From: Phallusia mammillata | Lineage: Eukaryota | Direction of reading: 5' to 3' | NCBI GenBank assembly: GCA_965637545.1 | Contig: OZ281495.1 | Location: 26,846,001-26,910,000, forward strand | DNA: 64,000 nt | Made by a program: the position numbers and the translations under genes | Shown: piece by piece, positions 17,912 through 56,570 of the stretch | Layout of the letters: each line of letters begins with the position of its first letter | Position numbering within the stretch: position 1 is the stretch's first letter | Notes under the pieces: model-generated | The model's input: only the letters and a program-made list of their open reading frames with translations | The model's database searches: none | What the model was told of the DNA's origin: nothing

Positions 17912-20900
17912 ATGGTCAACGCGTTCATAAAGTGTGCAGCGATAGCAATATGCGCCGCGGTGGCATGGCGGTGGTTTAGTGGCTCAAGGTTGCCACCTAA
18001 CGGCAGAGATGTACAACGCGTGGGGGCGCTCGAGAGCCTTAAAGAACATTCGCGCAAGTTTGATTCGGAGAAGATCGTCCAAGTAACCGATGGCGTGCAT
18101 GTTGCTATTGGTTACGCATTGGCAAACATGATAATGATCGAAGGTGGGCTTAAATTAACTCCTAACTTTTACTTTTAAACGAAACTTTATTTTCGTAATA
18201 ACGTAACATTGAGACTTTCTGTGGTAGCATATCCGCCGTAGCTGTAATCTATGTGAAGGTATTTGATTGGTCAACCAGTACTGATCACTATAAATCACTA
18301 AAATGGCTGCTATAATATATGAAACCCCTTTTTGCATACATATATATATAGGCACTGATGGAATCATCTTGGTTGATACTATGGAACATGAAGACGTAGC
18401 CATGAAAGCCTTTAAAGATCTGCGAAAGATAACCTCAAAACCGTTAAAAGGAATCATTATAACTCATTTCCATTTAGGTACATACTTTCCCTTTTTCTGT
18501 TTTTTGTGATTATCAACGGATTATAAGATATTCGTATTTTATAGATCATGTCGTTGGTGCAGTGTCTCTTCTACGTCAACACCCTGAAGTTCACATTTAC
18601 ATGCACGAGAGCACCAAGTCTGAACTGGCCCGTTTTGGTAAGTTTTGAATAAGCAAGACCTTGTTTAAACCACAACGAACTAGTTTAATTCATCGGCTAG
18701 TAGTATTTAAAAATATATATATCATATCAATCGCAGTACACCAGGCCCATTTGATTTGACGATATACCGAATAAGCCGGTGATCAAACATTCCAAAATGG
18801 AAAGTCGTAGGGTAGAAAAAGTGCCATATGTGAAAGTGCCGTGATTGCTGGTCTGCATAGACCAGGAGTTCCCAACCTGTGGTACGCGTACCACTAGTGG
18901 CACGTGAAGGTTTTTCAGGTGGTACGCGAGTAGCTTCCGTTTTTTCATAAAAACCTGTATTCAGACCTTTATATTTTCTTTTATACTTTACTGGCGATAC
19001 TGGTGGTAATGTGATAATGTAGGAAAGAAACTACAAAAAGTTGTAACTAACATTTTGTTACCAACTTTAGACTATCACATTTGTAGGTTTGGCTACTATG
19101 GTGGACCGTAAACAAAAATCTCATCAAAGTTGGTTGTGGTGCTTTAGTGTTATTTTGGTTCTTCTTCTGAATAAAATATGATTCGATCGAATTAAGAAGT
19201 GGTACGCGTTCCGGTACAGAGCGTCCAAGTGGTACGAGATCATAAAAACGTTGGGAAACCCTGGCATAGACGCTTCAGGGCTGAATCCAGTTATCAATCC
19301 ATGTTCAGTTTTGAAGAAAAAAAGACTTGAAAGCGACCCTTAACATCAATAGCATAATATCGTACTATTATATCGCGAAGGTGTTTCGTTTAATGTACTG
19401 TTTTAGTACAAAAATTTACAATTTGTGATTCCAAATCAATTTCAGTACGTTTGGGGGAAATCAACTTTGCCCGAGGAAGCCGACAGTTTGGAATATTTTT
19501 GGATGAGGACAAGGAAAAAATAAACGCTGGTATTGGGCCACAGTTAATGCAGGACGCAAATATGATGCATGTTGCACCAGAGGCAACTCATACGTACAAA
19601 GACAGAGAAACTTTTAACCTAGCAGGTGGGGAAAAAATTTAACATAAATATGCACTATGGCTTCAATTCTCGAAGTACCCTTCTCATTTTAATACCTAAG
19701 TTCTTAGCACTGGCTATTTCAAGCTTTTTTACCCGATTTCTAGCTTTTTAAACGTTGAATAAAGTGTTTGTCAACATGTGGCAAGTTTAAAAAACGAGAA
19801 TCTGTCAATGTTTACGTTGTCTTGCATGTTTTTGCTTATATTCAGAACGTTACAGAATCGACGTTATTCAAAAACAAAACATTATTGCAATTTATGTCAT
19901 GACCCTGGTGAAGGTGTCTCGAATGGGACATCGAAACGTCGGCATATTATAATAAAGACTGCTAAAAGAGCTTCAATTTGTTCAAACCAAACATATTTGT
20001 ATGTTTTAACAAGGTGTGGCCTTTGAACTTATCCACACGCCGGGTGAGACAGACGATCAAACTACAGTTTGGCTTGCAGACAAACAAGTAGTGTTTCCCG
20101 CTGACAATATTTACGAAACCTTTCCGAACCTGTACGCTATACGTGGTAGTCCGCCTCGGAGTTGCGAAAAATGGTACAAAAGTCTGGACAAAGTACGCCA
20201 GTTGGGGGCGCAACACATGGTGCCCTCCCATACGCGCCCCCTAAGTGGTAAAAAGGAGATCAATGACGTCATTACGATTTACCGTGACGCAATCCAGTAC
20301 GTTCATGATCAGACTGTACGGTGGATGAATAAGGGCTTTGGTGTGAATGAAATCGTTCACAAAGTGAAACTACCTCCTAAGCTTGCAGCACACCCTTATT
20401 TGCAGGAACATTACGGTACAGTAGCGTGGTCGGTCAGAGGTGTGTACGATTCGCTTATTGGATGGTTCGACGGCGATCCTGTTAACCTTTTCCCGCTGAC
20501 CAAAGCGCAGCGCGCTGGACGATGGAAACAGCTACTCGCGAGAGATTCAAAAGCAACCGCAGATGCAAAGATTTTGCAAGACGCATTAAACAGCCTCAAA
20601 GCGTCTGATGATAAATTTGAATTAATAGGGGAGTGTATGAACGATGAACTGCAGTGGGCTCTTGAACTGTCATCTCTGGCAGTAGAAGCAAGTGAAAATC
20701 AAGTGAAAGAAGAAGCGAAATCACTGCACGTTCGCGTTTTACGTAGCCTCGCGAAGTGTTCTAACAACGCCAACGCGAGACACTACTACCTGACTATTGC
20801 ACGCGAGATTGAATCCGGCCTTAAACTGCTCATGACGAAGAATTCTTTGCGCGACTTGCTCTTGACTCATCTTAACATAGACGAGCTGATGTCGTTTTTT

Positions 20901-21203
20901 CCGTTAAGATTTAAAGCAGAGGAATGCGACGAGAACACGCTACTGACTGTGGGTATGGTGTTCACCGACATACAGAAGTCGTACTACTACACTGTACGCA
21001 ACTGTATGGTCGAGTACCGTAAACATCCAGATGCAGTGCCACCTAACGTTGATGCAACCCTTACCACAACGTCCACTACGTGGCGTGAAATGGTCGTGCA
21101 AGAGAGCAGTACTGTTATCCAGTTTGCAACTGGAGGCTTGACGGTGACAGGCAGTATGTTGTCATTTCGAACCTTTATGAATTTAATTGAAACCTCATTT
21201 TAA
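17912..21203 (+). CDS. Alkyl sulfatase ALKS-A (SdsA1/BDS1-like; MBL, dimerisation and SCP2-like domains), about 606 aa, N-terminal hydrophobic segment
   Basis: Exons 17912-18143, 18352-18477, 18545-18637, 19446-19625, 20014-21203, all phase-1 joins (1821 nt). Motifs VTDGVHVAIGYALAN, THFHLDH, HTPGETDDQ, ADNIY, FPNLYAIRG, PSH, YRDAIQYVHDQT. Confidence 0.92.
18725..19285. mobile_element. SINE fragments (inverted piece plus tail) interrupted by a MITE, in ALKS-A intron 3
   Basis: gcagtacaccaggcccatt matches the minus SINE body. The tail gtgccgtgattgctggtctgcatagac...gcttcagggctgaatcc is split by the MITE. Confidence 0.7.
18863..19263. mobile_element. hAT MITE (gtggtacgcg family) inserted in a SINE
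   Basis: TIRs caggagttcccaac / gttgggaaaccctg; perfect TSD gcatagac (18855-18862, 19264-19271). Same family as 38916-39357. Confidence 0.9.
19885..19983 (+). mobile_element. Penelope-like element fragment with a degenerate minimal hammerhead motif
   Basis: ccCTGGTGAaggtgtctcgaatgggacatcGAAAcgtcgg (core 19905-19940). It aligns along its length with the reverse complement of 27088-27190. Confidence 0.6.
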
Positions 21204-22149
21204 TTGTGAATACGTTTCTTGGCGTTTTCGTTGGTGCGTAAGTGATGATAGGTTATTACAGGTAGCCTATTACCCAAAATGTTGCGATTTTTTTCTCCAA
21301 AATAATTTACAGTGTATTTAAAGATTTCTACATTATAGTTCTTCAAGCAATGAAGTCTACTTAGACATTCAAAGCCATTGGAATTTTTTATGTTGTATTT
21401 CGTGTTTACTTAACATTTAAATTATTGAATACTCCTCAGCTGTAGTTGACTGTTTTGATTTGAACAATTTCATCTAAAGTATACGTGATATATATGTCGA
21501 TGTGCCAAAAAACCCTAATTTCTTTATGTTCTACAAATAAGACACAGGTGCTTGCATGAAAAAATAAAGTGTATTAGGTGGGTCTTCTCTCTTCAACATG
21601 TGTTTTCTAATTCTGTTTTGGACGACATACAACATTTGTAATTATATTTTTAGTGTATGTTCATCTTTTTGTTTGTTCCAATTTGTTGTGATTGCGCAAC
21701 TTTCCTTGGTTCCTAATTTATTTTTGAAGGAATTTATTCAATGTTTGATGGGTTTGCTTAGTCTTATAGCAGATATTGACTTCATAGCAGTTTCAACATT
21801 GTTCTGTTGGCCTAGAAGTAAATTAGGACAGCGTCTAATCACATTGTTCTGCTGCTAACATGTCCGCACTATATAGTTTGTCGGTGGAAGAACAAGCATT
21901 TATAATCCATAGTTGTGATTACTTTGTATGCAGCAGGTACGAATCAACCCAGACCAAAATTAGTCCATCAGGGATTTGAGCTTGTGCGCAGATTTAGATC
22001 TAGAGTAGACTTTGTATTGTCATGCGGCAAAACTGTTCACTTAATAGAAACTTGTTAGATCCTTAAACGAAGGGCAATTGCAAATTTGGGACGTTTTTTT
22101 ATTATTTGAAGGTAATTACTTACTCGAGACATTTATACGGTTTACTTGT

Positions 22150-24090: not shown

Positions 24091-24643
24091 TTTTTTTTGT
24101 GTGTGTGTGTCATTGTGTGCCTAACCAACATAAATTATTGTTTTGTATGCAGTTTACAGATAGTAAAACTGCCCTCGACAGTTTTGGCAAGACTGCATCA
24201 CTTTTTGGAATGCATCACTAATTTAATTTTACTGGTATAAATGTGGTTTTGATCCGCCTTTGTATCGAAGTGCAAATTATATTTTCGAGTTTTTGCAACG
24301 AACACAAGCCCTTAATTGTGTTACTAACTAAAATCAAGTTGCACCCAAATTTATCTAGTACGTTGTTGTTTTTTCAAGTTTTTTTTTCTCATTTTACCAA
24401 AAGCTTTTTGTTATGCTCTTAAAATAAGTGATTGCATTGATTTACTTTGGAGAGTTTTCCAAAGCTAGTTCAGCTCTAACTTTGTAATGTCTTGTAACGC
24501 CCGACAAACATCTCTCCCAGGTAACTCATTGATTTGACATCCTTTATTTATTTTAAACGATGACAAAGAGACGGAAATGACGCCATACATTTTTATAATA
24601 GTTGAAAGGCTGCACTAGCCAATGCGGCCGATCTCTCGTCACC

Positions 24644-24695
24644 AGCTGCACTGATGAGACCTTATAGGTCGAAACAGTGTGCACTGTCTGCAGCT
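24644..24695 (+). ncRNA. Type I hammerhead ribozyme, canonical core
   Basis: Stem I agctgca/tgcagct; CUGAUGA 24651-24657; stem II gacc-ttata-ggtc; GAAA 24671-24674; stem III acagt-gtgc-actgt; GUC cleavage triplet with a predicted cut after C24688. Distal stem agccaat (24617-23) pairs with attggct (24704-10). Confidence 0.85.
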
Positions 24696-25059
24696 TATCA
24701 TTTATTGGCTCTATGCTTTTACATTTATAATAGTTGTTTAACTAAAACAATCGATGACCACAAACAACTCTTATTTAGTATGACTACGTCTTGCCACAAC
24801 AAAACTTTAACAACATGTTGAGCGCACTCATTTACTATGTCTCAGCTTTGTGATGTAATGTTCATTACGAAGAGCAGCATAAACGTCCTTGTTCCAGAAT
24901 CGTTTAGTTCTTTACTTTTTCTTAGTTTGTGACAACATGACCTGGAGAATAAATAAACTTGGTTATTTTTATAAAACTACGAGCGGTTGATGAGCAAATA
25001 TTTGTCTAACGGAGTAAAAATTGACGATACAAAATGGTGTTTTAGTCAGTAATTATCGT

Positions 25060-26150: not shown

Positions 26151-26170
26151 TGCTATATCGTTATGTACAG

Positions 26171-27038: not shown

Positions 27039-27064
27039 ATATACAGTATTTTGCCTTATGCTGC

Positions 27065-29335: not shown

Positions 29336-32300
29336 ATGAGAAAGCTGTTTGCACAAATATCGGTTTTCTTGGCCGTATTTGCTTGCATGGGCTTCTACTT
29401 CAACTGGAGATATGAAAACAGTTTTCCCATTCCCAACCATGGTAAGAAAATATTAGTTTGCTTTAAAAGGTGCCTTAAAATTTTCATTGTTTTAACGTAG
29501 TCGATTTGTTATTTTTTACACAAACCTTATATTTTCTCAGCAACCTTGTGGTATCACAAATTTCATGAAGCTTTCCAGGAGTTTAGAAATGCAACCACAA
29601 AAGTAATGATACCGTCAACAAAAGCAACTCCTGACTTTCTACAATCTACAATATTAAGGAATAATGAAAATAATGTCAATTTTTCAAAAAGCGGTAAGGG
29701 AACCTGAATTGTCTACTAGATGTCACAAATACTTATATTTAGTTTTCATTCAATATTTAACTAACAAAAAATCAGAATTTCTGATTGTAACTCTGAGCGT
29801 CGAGACAAAAAACTTTACTATTTATTAATTAGATGTGTTCATTTGACGGAGTTTTGTTAGTTTTAGTGTACAATCGTCATTGCGTGTGTCAAACCTTTTC
29901 TTTTTAATGAAATCTCCTTTCAGGTAAAGCAACTGCGACGAGTTCTTTTTTCTTGACCTCGTGTGTGTCAAAATTAGTTGTGATCTCTATTATCTCTTAC
30001 TTATTATAACCACAAAGATTTATTTTGACAGATAGTTTTAGAGTCCAGGAAACGTCAAGGCAAGTTTTGACTACAGCTACGGCGATCTCCTCAAAACCTG
30101 CAACAACAACACCAACAACATTTAGTACGTTAATGTTGGTAGTGCAAAAAAATGTTTTAAACTTGGTTCTCGTTTAGACTAGCCAAAACAACTTTGACTC
30201 TTTAAAATAGTATCAAAAGGCGCGGGTTTTCTTTTCATTTGGTGAACTAGTAGCTTTGTTTTAGGGCAGTGGTCAGCAACCTTTTTTCTACTGCGGGCCG
30301 TTTTTTAAACTGAAATTTTATCGCTGACCGGCCTTCAAAAAAACTACAAATATTTAGCAATGAAAACACACAAATTAGTTTATAATCCCCGGGATACATG
30401 GGGAAAATGTTTTAGAGCATTTAACCTGAAAAATAAAACGGCCCGGTAGCAAACTCGTCGCGGACCAGTACCGGGACGCAGACCGGCGGTTGCTGACCAC
30501 TGTTTTAGGGAACACAACACGGAAGCCAGCTCGGTTCGGAATGTTTTTAAATAAAGTTTCAATAAATTGCAGTAGTATTGACCAAACAAAATGTTAGGAA
30601 AGTGAAACACTGTATTTTATAGTTTGACAAGATCAATTGCTATCTAGAGGATTTCGTTATAACTTACGGATACATTTAACAAAATGTTAATGTAAAATTA
30701 AATGTCACATGCTCGCCAGAGGGCATTTTCAGTACCACTAAAAACATGTTAAAGGCTTGCATTGATTCTTTCGCTAATGCATTAGCATCACCATTTAGAA
30801 ATACAAGTACTAAGTAAGAAACTAAAGCAATTAACTAAGTATAGAAGACAAGTTCTAATAACCAAATGTTGTTCAAAAGGTTATATTTTTTGTATTGTGT
30901 TATATTAACATAACTTGACCAAACATAAGTTGGTAAAATTATTTCTAAACTTACATCACATCCCACATCTTTGCAAAGAAAAATAGAGATAAAGGAAAAA
31001 CCTTGGTTTAAATGGGACATGTATTTCCATTTGATCTTTACCTTGTGTGCAATGTTTTAGAAACGCCGGTGATTCTTTTATGGAACCCAACATTCCCCAA
31101 TCACAGATGGCAATTGCCAAACACAGATGTATGTGGCAATGGTTGCGAACTGACCAATAACATAACGAGATTCAATGAAAGTGACGCCGTTGTGTTTTGG
31201 ATGGAGAAAACAACAAGTGAAGTCAAAAATCACCCCTACATGCGTTACAGGTATATTGGATTTTCAGTAGTTTTTGCACAGCTTGCAATGGGAGTAAAAC
31301 TCTCAGTTTGTAACCAAAAAAATATTGTAAAAAGTGTTTGCGTTTTTTGGTGGTTCTCGTAGTTTACAATCGAATGTGAGGGAATTTATTTGTTTTTTCA
31401 TTTTGTTTAAACAAGGGTTTGTATAGAAACTCCACACACCCACATAAAAGTAATTTAGTCAAAATCGTAACAGGTTTGCATAACTACTAAGTCGGCGGTA
31501 AAATATGACAAAAGAAAATAATTATAGATATTGTTGTCACATTATAGCCACATTTCCATCATTTAAAGAATTTTTCGTACGACGCGTTTCATTTGCCTCG
31601 GATTAGAGAATACCATTCTAGTGGTCACAACGTTTAAAATTGTGAACTTATACGTGAAACGGACCCCTGTACAAAAAAAATTAAACTTTGATTCCTCGTG
31701 CAGGCGTCCGGACCAGGCGTTCGCGTGGTGGTGTGGTGAAAGTGCTTGGACAACTAATAATTTTCATCGACGAAACTTGCACGGCTATGAGAATTTCTTC
31801 AACTGGTCAATGCACTACAGATCCGACTCGGACGTAATTAATGCCCTAATGCCACACAGCGCAAGGGATTGGTTTTTGCATCGTGTGGGAAGGTATTCAA
31901 TGGCCATGTATATTATTTGCAACAAACAGTCTCGCGTAAACTACAGTACATATTTTAAATGTTATGTAATTGCACAAAATGATAGAAAATTTGTCTAAAA
32001 TTACAACATAATTACTTGGGAATCGTACAGTGGCCAGGCTCGGTCTGTTCCACATGTTGCGACTAAATTGTGCTGTCAATTTAGTGATTCTAGCTTTCAT
32101 TTACATTTATGGTTGTTTATTGTGTTGTGTAGAGCCAACGAATCGTCCTACAAGGAACTAAAACTGGTTACTTCAGAGAAAGAATTTGATGTTATGTTTG
32201 AAAAATTATTGCAGGTTGGTAACTTGTTACTTGAGATAAATCTAGAGTAAATATTTGTGTTGTAATCAAATCATAAAAAATGTGAATCGTCGTTGTACTG

Positions 32301-33753
32301 ACAATAACTAAAAGCCAAAACATCGCTGGACGTCGTAAATTGGTGGGCAAATTAAAACAAAACAAGGTTCGACGAAAAATATTTACACATACTCTCTCCG
32401 TAAATTGCAAGAGATAAAATATACAAAATAACGAGAATTGCTTTTAGCATCACGCCAGTTGAACGACAAATTGGTTAAATATGCAACCATGGTGGACGAA
32501 AAGTTTGTTTATTTTTAAGTTATCTGCGGTACTTATGCTGTTATAATAACCAGAGTTTATTCGGCTGCACAACTGGCCTTTTCATGCGATTCGTAGAGCT
32601 CAATTAAACTACAGTTTTTACTTGTCCCAAATTTAATCAATTATTGATTTTCTTTTGCAGACGAAGAAAAAAGGTGCGGCTTGGGTTGTGAGCGATTGCG
32701 ACTTGATGAAGGGCGCCAAAGCCCGAATGGAATTTGGCAAACGGATAGAAACGGAAGGAGAGTATAAGTTTGATATGTTTGGAGCATGTTCAAAAAAATA
32801 TCTGCCCTATGACAACGACAAGTTCTTCGAGGCTTTACAAGAATACAAGTAGGTTGGCGCATATTGGGTACGAAATATCTGTTAACCTTGTGTTTCAAAT
32901 ACAAAAGCATAGAAATTCGACTAGCTCAAGACACACAGTTACCAGGCAAATTTGAGTTGGTTATGGTGTTTTATTTTAACGCGAAAATTTCAGTAACACA
33001 AAATTCGGTAAAATATATATTTGCATAAAAATGCTTGCAATAACCTATAATTTTATGCATATTTTATCCTTATGATTTCGTTACCTTGCGACGGTTACAA
33101 TTTTGTGGTCAAAGAAAAGCAAAAAAAGCACTAAATGTCTAGTTAAACTTGGTACGAAATTGCCCTGACCTGTATTTTAATACTTTTTTTTAATAAAGGC
33201 AGTTTAAAGTGTGTTTCTTATTTTTAGGTTTTACTTTGCTTTTGAAAATACGTTTAATTGCAAAGACTATATCACTGAGAAGTTTTGGTACAATGGGTTG
33301 TATGCTGGGCTGGTTCCTGTGGTTTTAGGTTCATCCAAAGACAACGTGAAACGTTTGGCTCCGCCGGGCTCCTATCTACACGTGGAAGACTTTAACAATG
33401 ATCCAAAGCTACTTGCGGAGTTTCTTCGATATTTAGAAACAAATGACACAGCATATAAAGAGTATTTCAGGTACATCTTTTGGCAGTCATCCAAAAATTA
33501 CGTTTTTGACAATACTTACATGTGTTTTTGCAGATGGTGGACCATGCCTGGGTTTTATCCGCTTTTTAAAATCCGCGAAGGAGAGGTAGAGGACGACCAC
33601 GTGGCTATTTGGCACGAAGACTTCCAAGTCATGGGATTCTGTCATCTCTGTAAGAAGTTACAAAATGGCGACCATTTACACACGCATAAAGTCATTCCGG
33701 ATTTTTGGCAAGATTTCTACGGCAAAGAAGAACCGGAGTGCTACCAGCCCTAA
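29336..33753 (+). CDS. Alpha-1,3-fucosyltransferase (GT10), type II membrane protein, about 487 aa, 9 exons
   Basis: Exons 29336-29441, 29541-29693, 30032-30124, 31061-31250, 31704-31892, 32133-32214, 32661-32848, 33228-33470, 33534-33753 join in frame (1464 nt). N-terminal TM, Thr-rich stem, motifs ESDAVVF, GESA, FNWSMHYRSDSDV, AWVVSDC and YKFYFAFENTFNCKDYITEKFW. Confidence 0.92.
30267..30502. mobile_element. hAT MITE in a fucosyltransferase intron
   Basis: TIRs cagtggtcagcaacc / ggttgctgaccactg; perfect TSD ttttaggg. Same family as 60451-60628. Confidence 0.9.
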
Positions 33754-43223: not shown

Positions 43224-44370
43224 CTGTTCATAAACAGTGTATTGGCACATGTTGCCCTTTACGAACTCCAGGGAAACTAGAGTTGCATTTTAAGGTTACC
43301 GTAAAACTTTAAAGTAAAAGTAAATATTTTTTTTATGTAAATACGATAAATATGTTTAATTCAAGTTGATTAAACCATAAAAAACCTAAAAAGGAATTCA
43401 AAATCCCCGCTAAATTCTTTAATAGAAACCCATAGCAACAAATCCTTGTAATAATCACATTTAGCTGGAGCGGGTTGACCCACAAACTGTTCCCTTTTTT
43501 TTCGCAACCATTTCCAAATTGGTGATGGTTTTTGCGTAATTCTGACACTTGTACCCAGAAAAGAAATGTTAACCCAATTCAAGCTATTGCGAAGGAATAA
43601 AAAAATCCCTAAGTAAAAAAATCAAACCCAAATCTGACTGCTGCCTGCCTGACCCATTACCCAGTGACACCTGAATAAGTGTGCACTGGATACACCGCTT
43701 TGAGCTTCAAACTTTTATTGCTGAGCAATGTTTGTTTTACAAGAACCTGAGCAATACCGGTACTTGGCAATATTTACAGGCGAACTTCCAGTTGCCTGCT
43801 GGTTCAACTATGCAGGTGCTATGTGCCTATGTCAGGGCCGTTGCCTGTATGTGTAAACACGATTTTCTTTTATCCTGTGTCTAGTTTAGAAACACTGAAT
43901 TTTTAAATCAATTACGGTTCAACTTGGCCTGAATACAAAAATTTGTAATTTTAGGTAATTAACGTTGTGATTTAAGCCTTTTTTATATAAATGTAGAGTA
44001 ACTTTAATAACAAAAACATAACTGCCAGAGTACTTGTGTATATTCAACGTTGCATTCACCTTTTTTTCTAAGTGGTTATATAAATCCGGTTCTAGCTCGA
44101 TTGACAAAATCAACATTTATTAACAAAATCAGCTCCATTCGACAGACAAGACAAAATTGCATAAACCGTATCAATACAATATAAATACTGAACGGAAAAG
44201 CACAACACTGAACAGAAATGATGTGATGGAAAATAGGAGGCAGCTTTTGGGCAAAAAAGCGCTTTTTGACACTGGATTGAAATGGAAATACACAATACTT
44301 ACTGGAAGCTCAACGAAACAACAACAAACCAGAAAAAAAGACAAAGGAAATTAAAAACCACAACAATAGA

Positions 44371-47300
44371 TTATTTCATTGTATCTGTGATTGCTTTAAA
44401 ACTCATCATACTTCCATCAACAACCATATCTCCAGACATGTAAGCTGACATTCCACCTCGCTCCTTGCTCGATAAGTCACGCCATACTTGTGACGTCATT
44501 GTCAGCTTGACGTCATACGTTTCAGGGAGGCGAGCGTTATCGTCGATGTATTCAATAACGCAATTACGAAGTAAAAAGCCGTAGGTTTTGTTTAAGTCGG
44601 TGAAATATAAAATAGCTGTGATCTTTTTGTATGAGTCGCATTTTTCGGGATTTACTCTCCTGGTGAAAAGAGTCAACAAGTCGGTAATTTCCATCTTGTT
44701 GATTGCCACTTTTCTCGCCTTTCCAAAGTCCGGTATGTTGAAACTTCCGTCAAGCTCTGCGGCACACGAGAGGTAGTAGTTTTTGGCATTAATGCCCTCA
44801 GAATAACGAGCCATTATCAACAAGGCATTTATCTTGGCCCTTTTTGCCCGTTCATTCTCTCTGCTACCATCTTGTGATACAACAATGGCAGCGTTGGCGA
44901 CCTCTAGTGCCCATTGACTTTCAATGAACAAAATATTTCCAGTCTGTTTGAAATGATCCATTGACTTTATAGCGTTTTGTTCAGAACTTTGAATCATGGC
45001 ATCCAAGCCAGTAGAATTGCAAGTGTAATCTTCTAGCATTTCTTTTGTTTTCTGAGCTCGCTCCTTTATTGTCAGAGGGTGGACGTCGTGGGCTTCTCCA
45101 CTAAACCATCCAGTGTAGTTTGCATAAACAGCCCGCACAGCCCATTCCACCGTTCCGTACAAACCCCTCAAATGCGGCAGATTGACGAGCGAGGGTGGCA
45201 GTTTCACTTTCCGCACGATGTCGCTCACGTGCAATCCCTCATTGATTAAACGAACAGTTTGATCGTGAACGAACTGAATTCCATCTCGGTACGTGGTCAG
45301 AAACTCAAATATTTTTGCTTGGTTGTTCATTGGAGGCATATGTGCTGGAATCAAGTAGTCTGGTTGCAAGTAGCGAAGTTTATCGATGCTCGTATACCAG
45401 TCAACTGCACTTCGAGGAAAGTCTCCTCTCAGCGGACTAATGTTTGGAAAGGCCTGGTAAATGGTATCAGCAGGTAGAATGGCTCGTTTTCCAGGAATCC
45501 AAACCGCAACTTGGTCGGTGGTCTCTCCAGGAATGTGAATCAACTTTAATTGCACCCCTGTTTAAACAAAACAAAAAGGTTTTTTATGTTGTCTGGTTTT
45601 AATCCAACTGCTAACAGAAATAAAGAGTTAATCATACACCCTAAAACCAAACAGACGACGTGGTTTTGTACAACATAACCGAAAATTAACTTATAGTCAT
45701 TTGTGTCTTAATAATCGTACATGTGATGCATATTGGTAAATCGGATATACAGCAAACAGTAAGTATAGGACGGGTTAAGAGTTTTAAGTACAACACTTTA
45801 TATGTTGTAATGTACCGAATATTCTGTTTGTAGAATTTCCTCGGCCGAATCTATTTTTTTTCTATTTTGTTTGGCAAACCTGCCGTATCTTCGGTTGCGA
45901 CCAGAACCCAAATTATGCTGATTCGGCGCGTTACTAACTATTTGTGCTTTGTGAAAGACTCTGGTCTTTTTCATTTAAGGTTATCCTTTCTACTGTGTTA
46001 GTTTTACCGCCATTGATATCAAATAGGACGATAACACTGATACCTGCAACTGTAGTTTCGAGGATATCGTCCACTACGTGTGTCGGTTGAAGATCAACGA
46101 ACTGTTGAGTTCCTTTAAGTCGCAGTTTTGGTCCGGGAACCGTGCGCTTTGCTTTTTCATTGAGGCCAATCCCGAATTGTTTGATGGCACGACGAACTCC
46201 AGATTGTGAGGTAATTACTACATATAAAAACAAAATCATGTAAAAATGACAATTCCTTAGACTCTTGAGAATTTAATATAACCCCCATGTACAGCCTCAT
46301 CACGTAATGTTCTGCACCGTTTGACAGAAAACAAAAACTGATGCAAGCCAAGACCGTATACTTTACGTTCTTACACTCTTAGCTTCTGTCGAAAGCACTC
46401 CTATTGTCTATTACAGTGGTTCTACATTGACTCTACTTTTAGAATATCAAACGAGTATGCGGCATTCAGCGGTAAACTTACTAGTCATTAAACTAAAAAC
46501 TCAATTAAGTAATATATTTGTTTAAACAAAATGGTAGTATTTCTAGTACTAATGTACTTTTCGAAAAGCTTTATAATTTCTTTCAAATGTCAAAAATATA
46601 AAAAAATATAAAATTTCAGGTCGTTTTGTAATAATAATAATAACAATTTGTCATAATAATAACAATTGTAATTGCCACAGTGAATACGAAAAAATCTTGC
46701 TACCCACGAAAAAGACAAATAGCATCAGAGTGCCTGGGTTATTGTATGTCACGTTGCTATATATTTACCGTCTTTGCACTCTTTCTAGTCAAAACTGTTG
46801 TTTCTAGCTCACTAGTTGTTGACTTTTCTGCCACCGCTACCACTGTAAAACACATAATAGATCTAATTTGCCCAATTTGTGATTTGCCTTCCAGACGCCA
46901 TTTTTCTCCTTGACCCAACAAACACAACAGTAGCTGATGACTCAACGTCTAATATGTGCTACCTAATAATAATTTAATTACTACATAATACTAACTACAC
47001 AATACTACTACTAACTACCATTATTAACTTCTACTAACGCTACTAATCTGTAATACCTGCATATCGCCGTGAAAAGCAACCCCTAGGACTGTATGTGCCT
47101 CTGAACTGCCGTCGATTTTGATGACCTTACCCCTTTTCTGAAAAACAGTGATCGTATAGCTATCTGAATGTGTTTACCCGAAAATTTCGTTACCCAATTC
47201 TCAATACTTACAGCTCCTTGACACTTCTTTTGTGGTCAGTCTGTGCGCATAAACTTCCACTGGGCCCTCTGCGTTTTTCAGCAGCCAATCAACACCACGA

Positions 47301-49512
47301 ATGTGATCTAAAATTAAGAAACACGACTTGATAAAAGTTCACAAAGGAGCTATAAAAACCTTGTAAAAGTTGTTATTTACCCAAATGGAAATGTGTGAGA
47401 ATAATTGCCTTTAGAGGTTTCTTGGAGATTTTTCGAAACTCGAGCATGACTTCTTCAATAACCTCTGCACTTTCCGTAGTGTCGACGATTATGATTCCGT
47501 CCTCTCCTAAACTTTCAGAAAAACAACAACAAGTGTATGTCTATCATACATATTAAATGGTGCAAAATGGAGTTAAAATAAAGCATTAAGGGTTTTCATT
47601 TCAACGAGCTTCGTTTAAGAAACCGAACATAGAATTTTATTTTGACTTTCAGCGCTTTGAATTATCCGTTTGTATTAACCTTTGAACTTTAGGTAGATTC
47701 GAGTTGTTGGAAGTCAAGTAAGTATTACTCTTAAAAACTTTAACTTCAACTAAATAGCTTAAAAGGGCCTATTTATGCCAATATTTTACTAAATCATAGA
47801 ACACACTATATCAAAGCAAAAGAAAAATAAAGAAAATGACACAGAGAGATCTTGTCGGTAACGCTTAGAGAGCACATTAATAATATTCAAGTTGACCATG
47901 TTTTTTTTTCAGTGGTCTGAACCAGGGAGTCGAACCGGAACTGAACCCGAACCCGCGAACCGGTTTGAGCGGTTAATTTCATTAAACCCGAACCGAACCC
48001 GAACCGCTAAATACGATTTTCTAAAAACCCGAACCGGAGTTGAACCCCATGTTTTGTTTTGCGTTGGACCCGAACCGGAACTGAACCAGTAAAAAAATGC
48101 AGCGTGTTTCATATTTTCAAAACATCGCACTAAACTGACTAAAGTATACGCGAGATAACACTTATAGGGCGTGTCAAAAATAACAGTGCACGGTGAAAAT
48201 AATTTTGGAGTTTGATAAGGCCAGGTAGATGATGGGTAGAATTAAATTAAATCGAATGAAAATTTGAACCGGTTTAAAAACCGCAAACCGGATCGGACCG
48301 AATAATTTGCCCAAACCGGAACAAAACCCGAACCCGAAAATATACATTTTTAAAAACCTGAACCGAACCCGAACCCTTAAAAACAAAACGAAGTGAACCC
48401 GAACCTAACCCGAATCTTAAAAATCGAACGAAGTGAACCCGAACCGAACCTGAACCCGCATAACAAGCGGTTCGACTCCCTGGTCTGAACGACAAAAAGC
48501 CAACCTAGGTTAATTATTACCCTGCAAAATCATTTCACAACCAGAGTTGACTTGTCGGCTACATTGCTTTCACTTTTAAGACATGTTTTGTGCGAGTAAT
48601 TTGCAGTTACAAAAAATTAATTTATGAATTAGTTAAAAATTTGTAAATTAATAAATTAGTTTAACCACCTATCCCCAGAATGCTTTCAGTTTTCTCAACA
48701 TTTTTTCACAGAAAGATTTACACTCAGAATGCTCTGATCACATCAATGCATTTGTCATAACATGGTTTTGGTTGTTACCAACATCCAACCCCTTTCTAAT
48801 TATATTAAATGCGCAGCAAAATCCCATGACACCATAGACAGGGTGGGGTTTTTAGCCTTCTGTGGTAACAGACATGGTTTACCTGTGCATAAAGTCTGCT
48901 GACTCTTGGGTAAACTCTTGTAAATCACTTTACACAGAATAAGGCAGCGAAACATTACTACAAATTAAAACGAGTGTTGCAAAACAAAAAAGTTCAGAAT
49001 CCAAATTTATTTCTTTTTTCAGATTATGAGTTTGCTTGTGTAATGGGGTACTTAATTGCAATTTTAAGACAAATCCAAAGAATTGTTTACCTTATAGGTA
49101 ACGTTTTTACCTTATAGAGTGTTTACCCTATAGGTAACGCCTTGAAACTATTGCGCACACCCCACACATATCCGCGAACCTCAGTTTGGGAACCACTGCA
49201 CTTTAGGGTCATCTACACTGTCTGTCTATAGCCCACGAAAGACATTAAATTTATGTTATGACGTAACATATTGACTGTACCTTCTATCATAATCACATTG
49301 CTCAGTGCATAGTTCATCGCCACGTATATTCCATCCGTCGCCTTCTCAATGGATTTCGAATAGTTGTGTTGGTTTTTCGCTTCTTGCCACAGCTCCTCCC
49401 AGTCTTGCGATGCGGCCGACGGTCGGGCGACATCGGCGTGATCGGCGAACCAAACGCGATAACAGAGTGCGACACACAACGATACAATTGCAAGTTCGAG
49501 CAACTTGGACAT
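44371..49512 (-). CDS. Alkyl sulfatase ALKS-C (SdsA1/BDS1-like, divergent subclass), about 604 aa
   Basis: Exons 49512-49281, 47506-47381, 47307-47212, 46217-46044, 45557-44371, all phase 1 (1815 nt). Motifs THFHLDH, HIPGETTDQ, ADTIY, FPNISPLRGDFPR, PAH. Confidence 0.9.
47923..48482. mobile_element. hAT MITE with gaaccc/gaaccg subterminal repeats in ALKS-C intron 1
   Basis: 14-bp perfect TIRs cagggagtcgaacc / ggttcgactccctg; perfect TSD gtctgaac (47915-22, 48483-90). Confidence 0.92.
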
Positions 49513-52500
49513 AGTTATCTGCCACAAAACACATAATAGTTGTGTTTTCAGAACATGTAAGGCAGTGGGTACACTTGGGTAAAGCTGGCTGGGTTTCTGC
49601 AAATGTGTAATTATGTGTACACAAGCTATAAGTACAAGCTATACCTAAAGCATGTTCCTTCAATTCAGTTAGGCACAATAAGCAATATAGGGGTTTCAAA
49701 TGTGCAATCAAGAACAAGAACCCTTTATCTTAAAATAAAGTTAAAGTGTTAAATAATATATAAGCACATAATGTGGGAATACATACAACTTTAAGAAACC
49801 TAAAGGGAATTTTGCTTACTATTGTTTTATATCCTACACATTTTGTATTGTTTGCATTGCTATAAATGTATAAAGGTTAAACATTACATTTTAAACTGCC
49901 TGTCAACTGCAATTTTTTGCTGAAACTGCTTGTATTTTGGGTTATGGAAGATATATATGTACATATATATTTAACAATTATGACAAATCTGACTCCCAAG
50001 TTATGCAAAACCAAACCAATCAAAGATAATTGTATGTAACCTCATTTAAACAACACAACAAAAAATAACTGGCAAAGTTCAAAAACACCCTTACTTCACT
50101 TCCTACTTTATCAACACACTTCCTACTTTATCATTTCTATTTAATCTCCACATTTTAATTTCCATCTTTTCAAATACTTTTGTTCATATTGTGGCATGTT
50201 CAATGGTTTGTTTACACAATGGGGCTATGTTGGACATCAGCCAAACAAGCTTGCATTGTATAGCAAACACGATCTTTGCTTACCAGCTTACCTCCCAAAG
50301 CAGTTATCCATTATGTGAAGGTCAGTAAACATTGCTTTCCGATATCAGGACAATTGCTGGACATGTGCACACTGTAGGGCCTAATAAGTGTCTGCATTCA
50401 TAAAATGGTTATGACTACATAAGCATCCTTCGCAAAAGTGGAAAACGTTCTGGCCATCTGACTAAACATATTTAGGTAATCTAAAGCACATAATAGAGGA
50501 AACTCTTCTGCCGGAAGAGTTGCGAATCGGAAAACGCCAGCCCGCAAACTTTTGCTGCCATAAATGCTGTTGAAATTCTGTTTGTTGCTTCAAAGTTTGC
50601 AGTCTTGCAAGCCTAAGCAAAATGATTACCTAAAATCATTAATATCTACCATTATAAACAAAACCTAGTATTTGGAAACCAAGAAACACCACTTGTATAC
50701 TTTGCAGCATCATTGTAAAAGTTTTAAATAATATTTTTCAACTTTTCAACTACTTAAGTTAACGAGACAAAAATGCCTGCCCGCCATCTTTTGTCATTAC
50801 GTCACAGCGCTCAAACCGCGTCTCCGTGTGAAATGTTTCTCCTGGCAGGAACAACGAAGCCGCGCAAAGATCCAAATAACTCAGGTTGCAACGTACAAGC
50901 GCCGGCCACAAAACTGCTGTTTACCTACTTGCGATGCGCCTTTACTATACCCACTACAGGCGCTTTCATTTGACAGTCAAACTAAACGCGAGTTTACCGC
51001 TAAGCAAAAGATTTAACATGTGAAAATACACCACTGTGCACCTAACGGAGTCCAAAACATGAATCTATTGCCACACCAGGCGGAAAGTTTAATCCAAGCG
51101 AGCGAGGTGAGCTCAGTCAGCGGGTTCACTGGATTGGATGACACGCCCCTTTGCGAAACAGGCGCTAGTGGGCTGAAATCGATCAACTGGATCGCGGTCG
51201 CCAGTTTACGCTAGGATTCTAGACAACACGTTGCCCTTTTTTTCTGTCGCTGATCGATATTCAACAAAAGGGCGTAAAAACTTTGCCGTTGGAAAGCTTA
51301 TGTACGTACGTAAAAATGTAAAAATGTCCCTGTACGTAAAATCGGTGCTTTTTATTCTGTTTCAACGACCGAAATGTCATGTTTTTGTAAAGTTGTCCAT
51401 TAAACACTGGGCCTTATAAATGGTAGTATTTGCAGTTGCCAAATTAAAACGAGTGTTGCAAAACAAAAAAGTTCAGAATCCAAATTTATTTCTTTTTTCA
51501 GATTATGAGTTTGCTTGTGTAATGGGGTACTTAATTGCAATTTTAAGACAAATCCAAAGAATTGTTTACCTTATAGGTAACGTTTTTACCTTATAGAGTG
51601 TTTACCTTATAGGTAACGCTTTAAAATTTTTGCGCACACCCCACACATATCCGCGAACCTCAGTTTGGGAACCACTGCACTTTAGGGTCATCTACACTGT
51701 CTGTCTATAGCCCACGAAAGACATTAAATTTATGTTATGACGTAACATATTGACTGTATCTTCTATCATAATCACATTGCTCAGTGCATAGTTCATCGCC
51801 ACGTATATTCCATCCGTCGCCTTCTCAATGGATTTCGAATAGTTGTGTTGGTTTTTCGCTTCTTGCCACAGCTCCTCCCAGTCTTGCGATGCGGCCGACG
51901 GTCGGGCGACATCGGCGTGATCGGCGAACCAAACGCGATAACAGAGTGCGACACACAACGATACAATTGCAAGTTCGAGCAACTTGGACATAGTTATCTG
52001 CCACAAAACACATAATAGTTGTGTTTTCAGAACATGTAAGGCAGTGGGTACACTTGGGTAAAGCTGGCTGGGTTTCTGCAAATGTGTAATTATGTGTACA
52101 CAAGCTATAAGTACAAGCTATACCTAAAGCATGTTCCTTCAATTCAGTTAGGCACAATAAGCAATATAGGGGTTTCAAATGTGCAATCAAGAACAAGAAC
52201 CCTTTATCTTAAAATAAAGTTAAAGTGTTCACTGGATTGGATGACACGCCCCTTTGCGAAACAGGCGCTAGTGGGCTGAAATCGATCAACTGGATCGCGG
52301 TCGCCAGTTTACGCTAGGATTCTAGACAACACGTTGCCCTTTTTTTCTGTCGCTGATCGATATTCAACAAAAGGGCGTAAAAACTTTGCCGTTGGAAAGC
52401 TTATGTACGTACGTAAAAATGTAAAAATGTCCCTGTACGTAAAATCGGTGCTTTTTATTCTGTTTCAACGACCGAAATGTCATGTTTTTGTAAAGTTGTC

Positions 52501-52543
52501 CATTAAACACTGGGCCTTATAATTGGTAGTATTTGCAGTTGCC
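48961..52543. repeat. Recent complex tandem duplication Y-Z-X-Y'-X'
   Basis: Y 48961-49750 = Y' 51440-52229 (offset 2479). X 51124-51440 = X' 52227-52543 (offset 1103). Junction overlaps are c (51440) and gtt (52227-29). Confidence 0.9.
51760..51991 (-). pseudogene. Duplicate of ALKS-C exon 1 with inactivated splice donor
   Basis: Coding sequence reads identically to 49512-49281, but the donor is GAAG|atacag instead of GAAG|gtacag (position 51759). Confidence 0.85.
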
Positions 52544-52740
52544 TTTTGATTTGTCCTTACAACTGTTTATAGTTAATTATCAATTGATATTCTGATCAGA
52601 CAACAGTATTAAGTCTGTGTTAGCAACGATTCGTAAACATAAAGGTAAAGCAAATGTAACGAATTTAGTCCGTATATGACAAAGTGCTCCACTATTTAAG
52701 CTATTGCTGCCAGGCATAGTATCAAGTTTAAAGAGCTCTT

Positions 52741-52971
52741 CTGGCAAATGTTATTTTATTCCGACGTTTCGACGTCCTATACAGGTCGTCTTCATCAGGG
52801 CCAATCATTTGTTATCGCGCGGTTTTTTCGTTGCGTTGTGACGTGCTTGCGTTCCATTCTTTTTTTCCTTTGTTTATCGTGCACTGTACTAGTCGCATTC
52901 AGTGTTATTTACCCTGATGAAGACGATCTGTATAGGACGTCGAAACGTCGGAATAAAATCACATTTGCCAG
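52741..52971. mobile_element. Palindromic Penelope-like element end: two inverted minimal hammerhead motifs
   Basis: Arms 52741-52800 and 52912-52971 are reverse complements at 58/60 nt. Each reads ccCTGATGAagacg...cgtcGAAAcgtcggaataaa. Confidence 0.75.
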
Positions 52972-53336
52972 ATTTTTCATCAATGATGTGCTGTTTTTTA
53001 AATCACCTGCGCCGTGCTTTGAAAAAAAAAACACTCCTCACCCCATCATGCACCTTTTTCGATTGTGTGTATAATTTGCGTAGTAAATTCTTAAAAACAT
53101 AAATGTCGACAACACACACCGATTTAACAATTGCACATAACGAATCACGATACATAGTACAATTAGTTTTCATCACGTCGTGTAAGCCGGGAATTAGTTC
53201 ATCGTATCTGTGATTGCTTTCAAACTCATCATACTTGGATTTGAAATGTAAACACAAAATCGTTACTCGAAACTCAACGAAACAACAGCAAACCAGAAAA
53301 AAAGACACAAAGGAAATTAAAAACCACAACATTAGA

Positions 53337-56300
53337 TTAATTCATTGTATCGGTGATGGCTTTAAAACTCATCATACTTCCATCAACTACCATATCCCCA
53401 GACATGTAAGCCGACATTCCACCTCGCTCCTTGCTCGATAAGTCACGCCATACTTGTGACGTCATTGTCAGCTTGACGTCATACATTTCAGGAAGGCGAG
53501 CGTTATCGTCAATGTATTCAATCACGCAATTACGAAGTAAGAATCCGTAGGTTTTGTTCAAGTCGGTGAAATATAAAATAGCTGTGATCTTTTTGTATGA
53601 GTCGCATTTTTCGGGATTTACTCTCCTGGTGAAAAGAGTCAACAAGTCGGTAATTTCCATCTTATTGATTGTCACCTTTCTCGCGTTGCCAAGTTCAAAT
53701 GGAGTAAAGCTTCCGTCAAGTTCTGCGGCACACGACAGGTAGTAGTTTTTGGCGGTGATGCTCTCAGAGTAACGAGCCATCATTCCCAGTGCGTTTATCT
53801 TTGCCTCCTTTGCCCGTTCATGCTCACTATTGCCCTCTGCCGAGGCCACCAGTGCCGAGCTGGCAAGCTCCAGAGCCCATTGACTTTCCACAAATAAAAC
53901 CTGTCCTGATTCACGAAAATGATCCGTTGATTTTTTCAAGTTGCGCTCAGCTACCTGAATCATCGCATCCACGCCTCCAGTGGAGGTTTTCATGTCTTCT
54001 TCTAACAACTCCTTCATTTTTGCTGCCTTCTCTTTTATTGTAAGCGGATTAAGTTCCTCAACTTCTCCACTAAACCATCCAGTGTAGTTTGCATAAACGG
54101 CCCGCACAGTCCATTCCACTGTTCCGTAGAAACCTCTTAAATGTGGCAGATCGACGAGTGATGGCGGCAGTTTAACTTTCCGCACGATGTCGCTCACGTG
54201 CAATCCCTCGTTGGTCAGTCGGACAGTCTGATCGTGGACAAACTGAATTCCATCCCGGTAAGTGGTAAGAAATTCGAAAACTTTGTCTTTTCCACTGAGA
54301 TGAGGCATATGTGCTGGAACCAAAAATTCCGGACGAAGATAGCGAATCTTGTCAATGCTGGTGAACCAGTTCACAGAGCTACGAGGAAAATCCCCTCTTA
54401 CTGGGGCGATGTTGGGAAAGGCCATGTAGATTATGTCGGCTGGAAGCAGAACTTTTTTGTCGGGAAGCCAAACCGATATTTGGTCGCTTGTTTCGCCAGG
54501 AATGTGGATCAACTTTATTCTTACCCCTTAAGAAACATACTGCTAGAATTAACGAATAGGTGGTCTTAAAAGTCGAAATATGGCTACATGATTGCTGCAG
54601 TAAGAAAAAGATAATTTTAAAACTTTCAACGGACTTAGACCATCAGACACTAAATCAAAACGCTATATTTTAATGTTAAAAAGTCTACGGCTTTGGCAGC
54701 TATACTGTCTTTGAGGCACTGTGGTACGATTTTAGAAATCTTTAACTAAACTCATGACAAATATTTGAATAGGCAGCACCGATTTTCATTAGCAATTAAA
54801 TTTGTTTCGAACCTGATATGGTAGCTTCAAGAACATCGTCAACAATATGGGTAGGATGCAGTACAACAAATGACGGGTTCTCGTTCAATTTCGTCATGGG
54901 AGTGACAATAGAACTGACCTCTCTTCTTTTAAGCCCCAACCCGAATTGCCGAACTAACCGTGGAAATGCAGCTTGTGATGTTATCACTGAAAATAATGTC
55001 AAATACATTTTGTATGTACTATCATACGAATAGAGTGAGTTGATAGAAATGCAGTGGCCCTAACCACAAAAATAGTTCACGATGGTTAGCAAACAAGGAA
55101 ACAGCATTCGACAAAAAACGAAACGAATTGTAATTCAGAATTCGTGATAAAAAAGGCAAAACATAACTTACCAATCGCATTTTGGGTGTTGATTTTACTG
55201 ACAAGTAATCAAATCCTGTTTTAAAAGTTGGCTGATTTAACAAATTGAGATTAAGCAAGAGTTGTAGGCGACTTACATGATTTTGACACTTCCACAGCTG
55301 ATTCTCTATGCGCGTATACGTCCACTGGGTGTCCGGTGTCATTCAACAACCAATCAAGTCCACGGATGTGATCTATAAAATTTGGATCATACTGTTCACA
55401 AAATACCGACATATTGTCTTGTCTATTACTGCAAAGCTATTCTTGTTTCCTTTGGAAAAATTAACTAGTTTTGTAAACGTCCATCTTCCTCGCACCCTTT
55501 TTAACAGTTACTTCGATTCCGTGTACTCTTGTCATTGATGTAATAAATAAATGACGTTTTACAGATATAAAATACAAACTTTAAGCATGATAAAGGGCAA
55601 AGTGAAATGATACTTTCTAAGAGAACGCAACTCTTTGATATGGTGGCACATATGTTATTATACACATACTTCAAATTATTTACAGTTGTCTAACTTTTTT
55701 GAATCCCTATATACCTCTCGGTACCCATTGCCCCTTTGACTGTTGTGGAGCACGCTGGGGTTCACACCCACTTTCAACAGAACAGGTTTAGTTTTTTATC
55801 AAGCAGGCCAAAGCAATTTGAGCAAGCAATTGGAACGGATAGCAAAAACGGAAGTCAGACTAGCAAGCATTAATTAAAATTAGCTTTTTTTACCGTGTGC
55901 AGTTGATTTTTGTCAGGAAACATGAGGTATTGAGCAACTTTTTTTTCGTTGGCGTACCTGGGTGAAAATGAGTAAGAATAATTGCCTTCAACGGCTTATC
56001 GGTGATTTTTCGAAACTCTTTCATCGCTTCTTCAATCGCGCTGGGTGTTTCAGTTGTGTCCACAATGATTATTCCATCGTCACCTGATACAACAATAAGT
56101 CACTTTCAAAAACAACTGCCTTCCACCATAGGCTATTCAAGATTAGATTGAAGCTTCGACCAAGGCTATTCAAAATTAGGTTGGTTTAGCAGGCTGAGTT
56201 TTGACAAGCACACTCGCTAGATGCAAATTAGTGACATTCTTGATAATAATCAACGACCAATGCCATAGTTGGTACATATATATTTTGAAGAAATGGCAAC

Positions 56301-56570
56301 TTTTAATATTTACAGGTATAAGTATAACTGTTTTGTTTACTCGCCTTCGATCATTACGACGTTGGCCAATCCGTAGTACATTGCCACATGTACGCCGTCA
56401 GTCACCTTCTTAAGTGTTTTGTTAAATCGGTCTTTGTTTTCGGCCGGCAAAATGTCTTCCCAATCTGAAAGAATGGACCGGCGATCGGCATTAGATTTGT
56501 CGGCAACAAAGTACCTGTAGCAAAACGCCACAAACAGTGACGCTACGGTAAAGTACAGCAGTTTTGACAT
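53337..56570 (-). CDS. Alkyl sulfatase ALKS-D (SdsA1/BDS1-like, divergent subclass), about 603 aa
   Basis: Exons 56570-56345 (GC donor gcgagt), 56083-55958, 55372-55277, 54986-54813, 54526-53337 (1812 nt). Motifs THFHPDH, HIPGETSDQ, ADIIY, FPNIAPVRGDFPR, PAH. Confidence 0.9.

Follow-up and report, generated by a model that had tools for sequence, protein, structure and literature searches.

Alkyl sulfatases of SulfAtlas family S3 have recently been reported from tunicates by Tamura, Oda-Ishii and Satou (Genome Biol Evol 2026; PMC13390645), who presented five Ciona genes (KY21.Chr1.634, Chr4.174, Chr4.175, Chr7.261 and Chr12.724), active in several tissues of the adult, blood cells among them, as candidates for horizontal gene transfer (HGT). 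According to this work, many tunicates have homologues, as do molluscs, annelids, rotifers and nemerteans, and none was found for other deuterostomes in NR or InterPro. The published trees leave it undecided whether spiralian or bacterial proteins are nearer to the tunicate ones, and the proposed route runs from a bacterium to a spiralian and from there to a tunicate, with ancestral presence followed by loss also allowed; intron positions, protist relatives and Hydra are not given for the family (PMC13390645). The present analysis concerns a 64,000-nucleotide stretch of the Phallusia mammillata genome (contig OZ281495.1, positions 26,846,001 to 26,910,000; hereafter the window), in which positions 17912-56570 hold four intact five-exon alkyl sulfatase genes, G1-G4, coding for proteins of 606, 610, 604 and 603 residues. 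The cluster is real, was correctly described by the initial annotation of this DNA and belongs to the enzyme family already reported in tunicates; its members are likely to be four linked, functional, intron-bearing genes of the S3 (type III, SdsA1/BDS1/YjcS-like) class. What is added here to the published picture is the four Phallusia gene models, one of them RNA-supported, an intron shared with spiralians, an all-eukaryote grouping and an intronless copy in Hydra.

The initial annotation had regarded the cluster as undescribed and expanded. Since PMC13390645 reports the Ciona S3 genes as transfer candidates, the core of that idea was already published; the 2026 paper covers the family in tunicates, and the Phallusia protein A0A6F9DL08 already bears the name 'Alkyl/aryl-sulfatase BDS1'. 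Nor is the family expanded in this species, four genes being no more than those of Ciona (6), Clavelina (6) and Styela (5) among the named matches. The structural part of the description stood. The two outer coordinates, 17912 and 56570, coincide exactly with the start codons of the two outer genes, and spliced models and duplicate alignments bear out four intact genes with additional exon-level duplicates. The models are as follows, with exons in order of transcription:

17912-18143, 18352-18477, 18545-18637, 19446-19625, 20014-21203, plus strand: G1, 606 residues, A0A6F9DL08 threaded on the DNA; exons of 232, 126, 93, 180 and 1190 nt; open reading frame (ORF) of the last exon 20016-21203, with Pfam matches to Alkyl_sulf_dimr and Alkyl_sulf_C
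38545-38317, 38182-38057, 37912-37817, 36753-36580, 36293-35086, minus strand: G2, 610 residues, best GT-AG model against ascidian homologues; exons of 229, 126, 96, 174 and 1208 nt; last-exon ORF 35086-36240, with Pfam matches to Alkyl_sulf_dimr and Alkyl_sulf_C
49512-49281, 47506-47381, 47307-47212, 46217-46044, 45557-44371, minus strand: G3, 604 residues, homology-guided GT-AG model; exons of 232, 126, 96, 174 and 1187 nt; last-exon ORF 44371-45555, with Alkyl_sulf_dimr, Alkyl_sulf_C, SCP2 and the end of Lactamase_B
56570-56345, 56083-55958, 55372-55277, 54986-54813, 54526-53337, minus strand: G4, 603 residues, model from homology and hand inspection, with a GC donor; exons of 226, 126, 96, 174 and 1190 nt; last-exon ORF 53337-54512, with Alkyl_sulf_dimr, Alkyl_sulf_C, SCP2 and the end of Lactamase_B

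G1 was modelled by threading the deposited protein (P0001, the UniProt entry A0A6F9DL08 of Phallusia mammillata), from which its translation differs in 1 of 606 residues (99.8% identity); all its donors are GT and all its acceptors AG, and the near-identity identifies the genes as ascidian. For G2 and G3, GT-AG pairs were enumerated under the guidance of homologues, and for G4 hand inspection was added. G2 is 50% identical to a Clavelina protein (P0005) across residues 4-607, and no Phallusia protein entry for G2-G4 appeared among the top matches of the word-index protein search. In intron 1 of G3, the donor/acceptor pair 49276/47501 is possible beside 49281/47506, the latter being chosen for homology with the other cluster genes. 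Intron 1 of G4 has a GC donor (AAG/GCGAGT) and not GT.

The 16 introns of G1-G4, all in phase 1, occupy four common alignment columns, after which the remainder of each gene follows as a single last exon of 1187-1208 bp, in agreement with the four shared phase-1 introns and the last exon of about 1.19 kb seen by the initial annotation. This common exon structure supports descent of the four genes from one ancestor. Their status as true host genes was likewise upheld by the introns, by spliced complementary DNA (cDNA) and by animal neighbours, a GT10 fucosyltransferase and a G-protein-coupled receptor (GPCR). Moreover, the GC content of the alkyl sulfatase genes (36-41%) is the same as that of the rest of the window, which is uniform at 35-42% and has no runs of N.

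Membership of G1-G4 in S3 is secure on fold and domain set, and the features first noticed, a hydrophobic N-terminus, an HxHxDH di-metal site, a dimerisation region and an SCP2-like domain, were found in all four genes. Alkyl_sulf_dimr (PF14863) is matched in every last exon with E values from 1.6e-25 to 1.3e-30 and the SCP2-like Alkyl_sulf_C (PF14864) with 6e-9 to 1.5e-12; SCP2 (PF02036) and the C-terminal end of Lactamase_B are matched only in the last exons of G3 and G4. A Lactamase_B annotation is precomputed for A0A6F9DL08, and G1-G4 are colinear over their full length with homologues annotated as metallo-β-lactamase (MBL) fold proteins. The assignment to the SdsA1/BDS1-type, MBL-fold family is further backed by the metal ligands and by similarity of P0001 (G1) to solved enzymes, in each case over residues 45-599 of 606:

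4NUR, PSdsA/SdsAP: E 3e-54
4PDX, YjcS: E 2e-46
2CFU, SdsA1: E 2e-41
4AV7/2YHE, Pisa1: E 3e-37

The HxHxDH motif is present in all four proteins, as HFHLDH in G1 and G3, HFHGDH in G2 and HFHPDH in G4. A six-frame search of the window for H.H.DH returned nothing, because the motif is interrupted by intron 2 after its fourth residue. The zinc ligands of SdsAP are His192, His194, Asp196, His197, Glu303, Glu322 and His367 (PMC5426288); transferred through the alignment of P0001 with SdsAP (chain numbering plus 41), they correspond to H116, H118, D120, H121, E222, D241 and H283 of G1. All mapped ligands are retained in G1-G4, with Asp replacing Glu322. The Glu303 equivalent is the E of PGET and the His367 equivalent the H of PSHTR/PAHMP, both found in four of four genes. 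The specificity residue Tyr246 of SdsAP is Phe throughout (RQFG/KQFG), and Asn and the two following Arg (FPNLYAIRGSPPR) are retained beside the motif YETFPN. Catalytic competence of G1-G4 is likely.

Several observations weigh against functional alkyl sulfatases of the known type. The bridging 'cysteine-site' ligand Glu322 is Asp in all four proteins (PADN/PADT/PADI; D241 in G1). This Asp, a conservative carboxylate ligand, lies exactly 19 residues past the first Glu, the same spacing as in SdsAP, and recurs in the relatives aligned from spiralians, protists and the closest bacteria. Gly263, another specificity residue of SdsAP, is retained in G1 and G2, and the loop is divergent in G3 and G4. 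In the pairwise alignment, the THTLHN motif of SdsAP corresponds to YETFPN in G1-G4, with both His replaced. The sulfate-protonating residue of Pisa1 is presumably His317, which may match one of the THTLHN histidines. Because these are replaced, the Pisa1-type acid catalyst may be missing in G1-G4; in Pisa1, the acid that protonates the leaving sulfate is a histidine (PMC3920027). No enzyme assay for any animal S3 member is reported in PMC13390645, and G4 is the gene of the cluster on which RNA was mapped. Basic residues after the hydrophobic segment would also allow an anchor with the protein facing the cytosol.

The hydrophobic segment itself is a single stretch at residues ~1-20 of each protein (mean Kyte-Doolittle value 1.7-2.1), with no other comparable segment in G1-G4. 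It is found in every tunicate and spiralian homologue examined, in Hydra and in nearly all protist homologues, and 5 of the 7 close bacterial relatives examined have a lipoprotein-type signal ending in a lipobox Cys. From this start, G1-G4 are presumed to enter the secretory pathway, into which the segment would bring the protein either as a cleaved signal or as a membrane anchor. A hydrophobic channel formed with the SCP2-like domain might then hold the alkyl chain of the sulfate ester, and a zinc-activated water would split the ester into alcohol and sulfate. The likeliest substrates would be the medium-chain alkyl and alkenyl sulfates known from ascidians, this substrate assignment and the secretory or membrane location being inferences. 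In the published work, tunicate S3 genes were proposed to stand behind tunicate-specific traits, namely the alcohol odour of Halocynthia, with n-alcohols released from C8-C10 alkyl sulfates, and the supply of sulfate for vanadium storage (PMC13390645). G1-G4, two of which have the divergent substrate loop, are ready candidates for the assay of an animal S3 sulfatase.

Transcript evidence comes from contigs of sequencing runs X1-X3, which are taken as cDNA because the contigs are spliced. Those of G4 cover exons only; they cross intron 4 by the junction 54525/54812 and intron 2 by the junction 55372/55958, and their edges agree exactly with the limits of exon 3 (55277-55372) and of exon 4 (54812-54986). 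In comparison, the DNA run X5 yielded an unspliced contig spanning 54175-56900. One G4 cDNA contig runs two letters past exon 2, to 56085, and this end fits the GC-donor model because exon 1 would end in ...AG. For G1, there is the correspondence to a deposited Phallusia protein.

Three further features record later events in the cluster:

43228-42036, minus strand: degenerate last-exon copy (pseudo-exon) situated shortly downstream of G3, with 77.7% nucleotide identity to the G3 last exon
51991-51755, minus strand: copy of G3 exon 1, within the 790-bp duplication 51440-52229, itself a copy of 48961-49750
53299-53640, minus strand: 3' terminal part of G4, which scarcely differs from that of G3 (44333-44670); a probable gene-conversion tract

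The last-exon copy retains an acceptor-like CAG/G and is preceded by no copies of exons 1-4. It is a dead fragment, given an in-frame stop after ~65 codons and at least three frameshifting indels (2, 1 and 1 nt) beside a 3-nt insertion. The two arms of the 790-bp duplication are 99.2% identical. Within them, the exon-1 copy matches G3 at 237 of 238 positions, the single change destroying the donor (GAAG/GT to GAAG/AT), and no X1-X3 cDNA contig lies over the copy. G3 and G4 are 70% identical with a dN/dS of 0.16, a value that shows purifying selection on both. Over the final ~300 coding nt the two are 92-97% identical as against 51-86% elsewhere, and gene conversion of the 3' ends is probable from this pattern. 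Old duplications built the cluster, since for G1, for G2 and for the G3/G4 pair the nearer relatives are in each case found outside Phallusia; the duplication that gave G3 and G4 would be later than the other splits, with 3' gene conversion and the partial exon copies arising afterwards.

The closest described system is that of Ciona, where the S3 gene P0003 has the same five exons and four phase-1 introns as the genes of Phallusia. G1 is nearest to P0003 (52% identity), a pairing that is weak in the FastTree run and unresolved in both IQ-TREE runs. Ciona also has tandem copies; Phallusia differs in that all four genes lie within one 39-kb cluster. On the Ciona intestinalis sequence AP043570.1, the strand opposite to that of P0003 carries a second paralogue with a 542-aa product ~1 kb upstream, and Ciona thus also keeps linked copies.

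The primary alkyl sulfatases SdsAP (4NUR) and SdsA1 (2CFU) of Pseudomonas have the same three-domain layout as residues 45-599 of G1 and share with the tunicate proteins HxHxDH, the equivalents of Glu303 and His367 and an N-terminal export signal; the identity is only ~25-30%, and the tunicate genes are eukaryotic and carry introns. The nearest prokaryotic relatives belong to a lipoprotein subfamily with members such as those from Isoalcanivorax pacificus (P0084) and from metagenome-assembled genomes of Desulfobacterales (P0096) and Hydrogenedentes (P0099). With 39-41% full-length identity, they have the variant motifs PGET, xxDN and FPNLYxIRG in common with tunicates but differ by a lipobox signal peptide (…L-x-G/A-C), by THNHxDH in place of THFHxDH and by the absence of introns. 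Spiralian proteins named 'linear primary-alkylsulfatase-like' (Pecten P0057, Owenia P0053, Tubulanus P0068) are 40-45% identical over the C-terminal 395 aa queried. Their genes share with those of tunicates the N-terminal hydrophobic segment, a single last exon of ~1.1 kb and the codon and phase of the last intron, whereas they have three introns instead of four, the two 5' ones being in phase 0 at other positions. Yeast BDS1, the source of the database name of G1, has the same Pfam domain set; it was not among the 150 best named representatives, and the animal genes group with protist genes and not with a named fungal sequence.

For the comparison of introns, the genomic loci of six homologues (Ciona, Clavelina, Styela, Pecten, Owenia and Tubulanus) were threaded exactly with their proteins. 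All four phase-1 introns of Phallusia are common to Ciona, Clavelina and Styela, which makes the gene structure older than the divergence of the three ascidian orders. Three introns, in phases 0, 0 and 1, are common to Pecten, Owenia and Tubulanus. The last intron lies in the same Gly codon and in phase 1, before HxPGET, in the four ascidians and in the mollusc Pecten, the annelid Owenia and the nemertean Tubulanus, and in tunicates and spiralians alike the introns are confined to the 5' third of the gene and followed by a single last exon of 1.1-1.2 kb. Under uniform insertion of four and three introns into ~1,800 possible sites, a coincidence has a chance of <1%, a value that becomes higher if CAG/G-like sites are preferred. 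The shared last intron is good but not conclusive evidence for a common intron-bearing ancestor. Many database ORFs of ~370-400 aa start exactly at the last-intron boundary, which suggests that this boundary is widespread.

Protist genes were inspected for introns at corresponding sites. The deposited protein of the foraminiferan Reticulomyxa filosa (ETO19477.1, from ASPP01013633.1) has a 29-residue insert that is absent from all homologues; a GTACGT donor at position 1933 of the extracted locus (L008) and an AG at 2067-2068 would remove it. Re-read in this way, the gene would have a phase-1 intron in the same Gly codon, and the deposited model probably reads part of this intron as coding. Two introns of Pelomyxa were rejected as shared positions, one lying one codon off tunicate intron 1 and the other falling in the intron 3 column in a different phase.

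Relatives were collected by a word-index protein search with the first ORF, followed by an exhaustive search of representatives, which gave 645 clusters below 1e-30. Phallusia was followed by paralogues of Clavelina, Ciona and Styela, these by matches in bivalves, in one annelid and in one nemertean, and bacterial and metagenomic sequences came after them at ~40%; no non-tunicate deuterostome was found among the named matches, most matches having no name. The protist homologues, with the grounds for their assignment, are:

Reticulomyxa filosa (foraminiferan), P0205: eukaryotic by 3 introns
Pelomyxa schiedti, P0202: eukaryotic by 12 introns
Cardiosporidium cionae, P0193: eukaryotic by 6 introns
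Siedleckia, P0194: named in EukProt
Stygamoeba, P0124: named in EukProt
Thecamoeba, P0146/P0261: named in EukProt
Protist contig with protein P0155: eukaryotic, as it carries FancD2
Protist contig with protein P0222: eukaryotic, as it carries a TMEM135-like gene

Beside them, Hydra vulgaris has a 'linear primary-alkylsulfatase' encoded in a single exon on a 39-Mb chromosome (CP147929.1; L007 1001-2764). It groups with the spiralian and tunicate genes and could be a retrocopy or a separate acquisition. Cardiosporidium cionae, an apicomplexan that lives as a parasite in the blood of Ciona, has a six-intron homologue (JADAQX010000725.1; L010 3001-8121), which falls together with that of the gregarine-like Siedleckia and not with tunicates.

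Trees were built with FastTree (174 rows) and with IQ-TREE under LG+C20 with posterior mean site frequencies (PMSF; 93 rows) and in a careful 43-row run, the latter set also serving for approximately unbiased (AU) tests. Tunicates are monophyletic in all three trees (100/100). In both IQ-TREE runs, the bacterial rows all fall on one side of a branch (99 in the Shimodaira-Hasegawa-like approximate likelihood ratio test, SH-aLRT, with 93 rows; 89/95 with 43 rows); in the FastTree run, one 15-row group stands outside the bacteria/eukaryote split. The eukaryote group comprises tunicates, spiralians, Hydra, Reticulomyxa, Stygamoeba, Thecamoeba, Pelomyxa, Cardiosporidium, Siedleckia and the two protist contigs, and so holds amoebae, apicomplexans and a foraminiferan beside the animals. 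Support of 84-90 joins tunicates and spiralians plus Hydra to the Reticulomyxa group and a pair of picoeukaryotes, in an assemblage whose resolution is weak. Tunicates are neither inside nor sister to the bacterial clade and are placed among spiralian, Hydra and protist rows.

The intron, protist and Hydra evidence moves the question of origin away from a simple passage from bacterium to tunicate. Very probably, the tunicate family did not come from bacteria directly or recently and is part of a eukaryote-wide S3 branch that shares one intron with spiralians. Three points weigh against this conclusion: the one intron in common could have been gained in parallel at a CAG/G site, the deep branches of the trees are weak (80-90), and the AU rejection of tunicates beside bacteria is marginal (p 0.049). 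The initial annotation had set vertical, low-copy inheritance across animals against a transfer. Of these two elements, extension beyond tunicates is found, with gene structure shared across phyla, whereas the family is multi-copy and patchy.

One explanation, put forward tentatively, is vertical descent, by which an intron-bearing S3 gene of the bilaterian or metazoan ancestor was kept in tunicates, in spiralians and perhaps, as a retrocopy, in Hydra. The identical position and phase of the last intron in four ascidians and three spiralian phyla speak for it, as do the 5' introns and long last exon in both lineages, the hydrophobic N-terminus common to all, the placement of the animals in the eukaryote group and the survival of a tunicate plus spiralian clade in the AU test (p 0.21). 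It implies loss in vertebrates, cephalochordates, ambulacrarians and most ecdysozoans, and this requirement of many independent losses is its main cost, no other deuterostome being present among the named matches or, according to PMC13390645, in NR or InterPro. Moreover, the other three tunicate introns and the two other spiralian introns do not coincide, a foraminiferan group stands among the animal branches and the Hydra copy is intronless. Should vertical descent hold, the tunicate genes would represent an old membrane or secretory S3 lineage whose phase-1 intron was inherited from the animal ancestor, and the 2026 label of 'HGT candidate' would be wrong; this too is put forward tentatively.

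An old transfer between eukaryotes is possible and hardly less likely, the two readings not being separated by the data. Intron-bearing DNA would have reached the tunicate ancestor from a spiralian, as in PMC13390645, or from a marine protist. The patchy spread among animals and protists is what such movement would leave, and a shared intron is compatible with the passage of genomic DNA. The foraminiferan group is interleaved with animals, and the re-read Reticulomyxa intron would sit at the same codon and phase. A homologue exists even in Cardiosporidium cionae, a parasite of Ciona; however, this gene is distant and its introns are different. Furthermore, no donor is resolved, since tunicates are nested neither in spiralians nor in any protist group, and just one spiralian intron has been retained.

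A direct passage from a bacterium to the tunicate ancestor, unconnected with the spiralian genes and followed by the gain of all introns, is very unlikely given the intron shared with spiralians, the all-eukaryote group with protists and the Hydra copy. It draws on the mostly bacterial distribution of the family, on the nearest bacterial proteins being about as similar (39-41%) as spiralian ones (40-45%), and on the published trees being undecided between spiralian and bacterial neighbours (PMC13390645). Against it, the sampled bacteria form one clan without eukaryote rows, placing tunicates beside them costs 21 log-likelihood units in the AU comparison cited above, and the spiralian-shared intron would need parallel gain. 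The bacterial transfer into tunicates entertained by the initial annotation was therefore not upheld, the family being present in spiralians and Hydra and grouping with protists outside bacteria. Bacterial contamination of the assembly or dead pseudogenes are ruled out for practical purposes by intact reading frames, a dN/dS of 0.16, four spliceosomal introns per gene with spliced cDNA contigs, animal genes between and beside the sulfatase genes and a GC content that fits the window.

Among the neighbours, the interval from G1 to G2 contains a GT10 fucosyltransferase gene of several exons at 31012-33753 (plus strand), with Glyco_tran_10_N matches at 31012-31359 and 31621-31995 and a Glyco_transf_10 match at 33211-33750. 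Upstream of the cluster, an ORF at 8649-9065 (plus strand) gives a near-threshold match to rhodopsin-type GPCRs (7tm_1, E 4e-7). An Rfam scan of the whole window at gathering thresholds returned no match, including at an element of ~220 bp at 52745-52968. This element has terminal inverted repeats of ~48 bp, which hold CTGATGA...GAAAC, the hammerhead-like core motifs. Its contig depth in the DNA run is ~1,000-fold over that of the surroundings, and it is present in the cDNA-like runs too.

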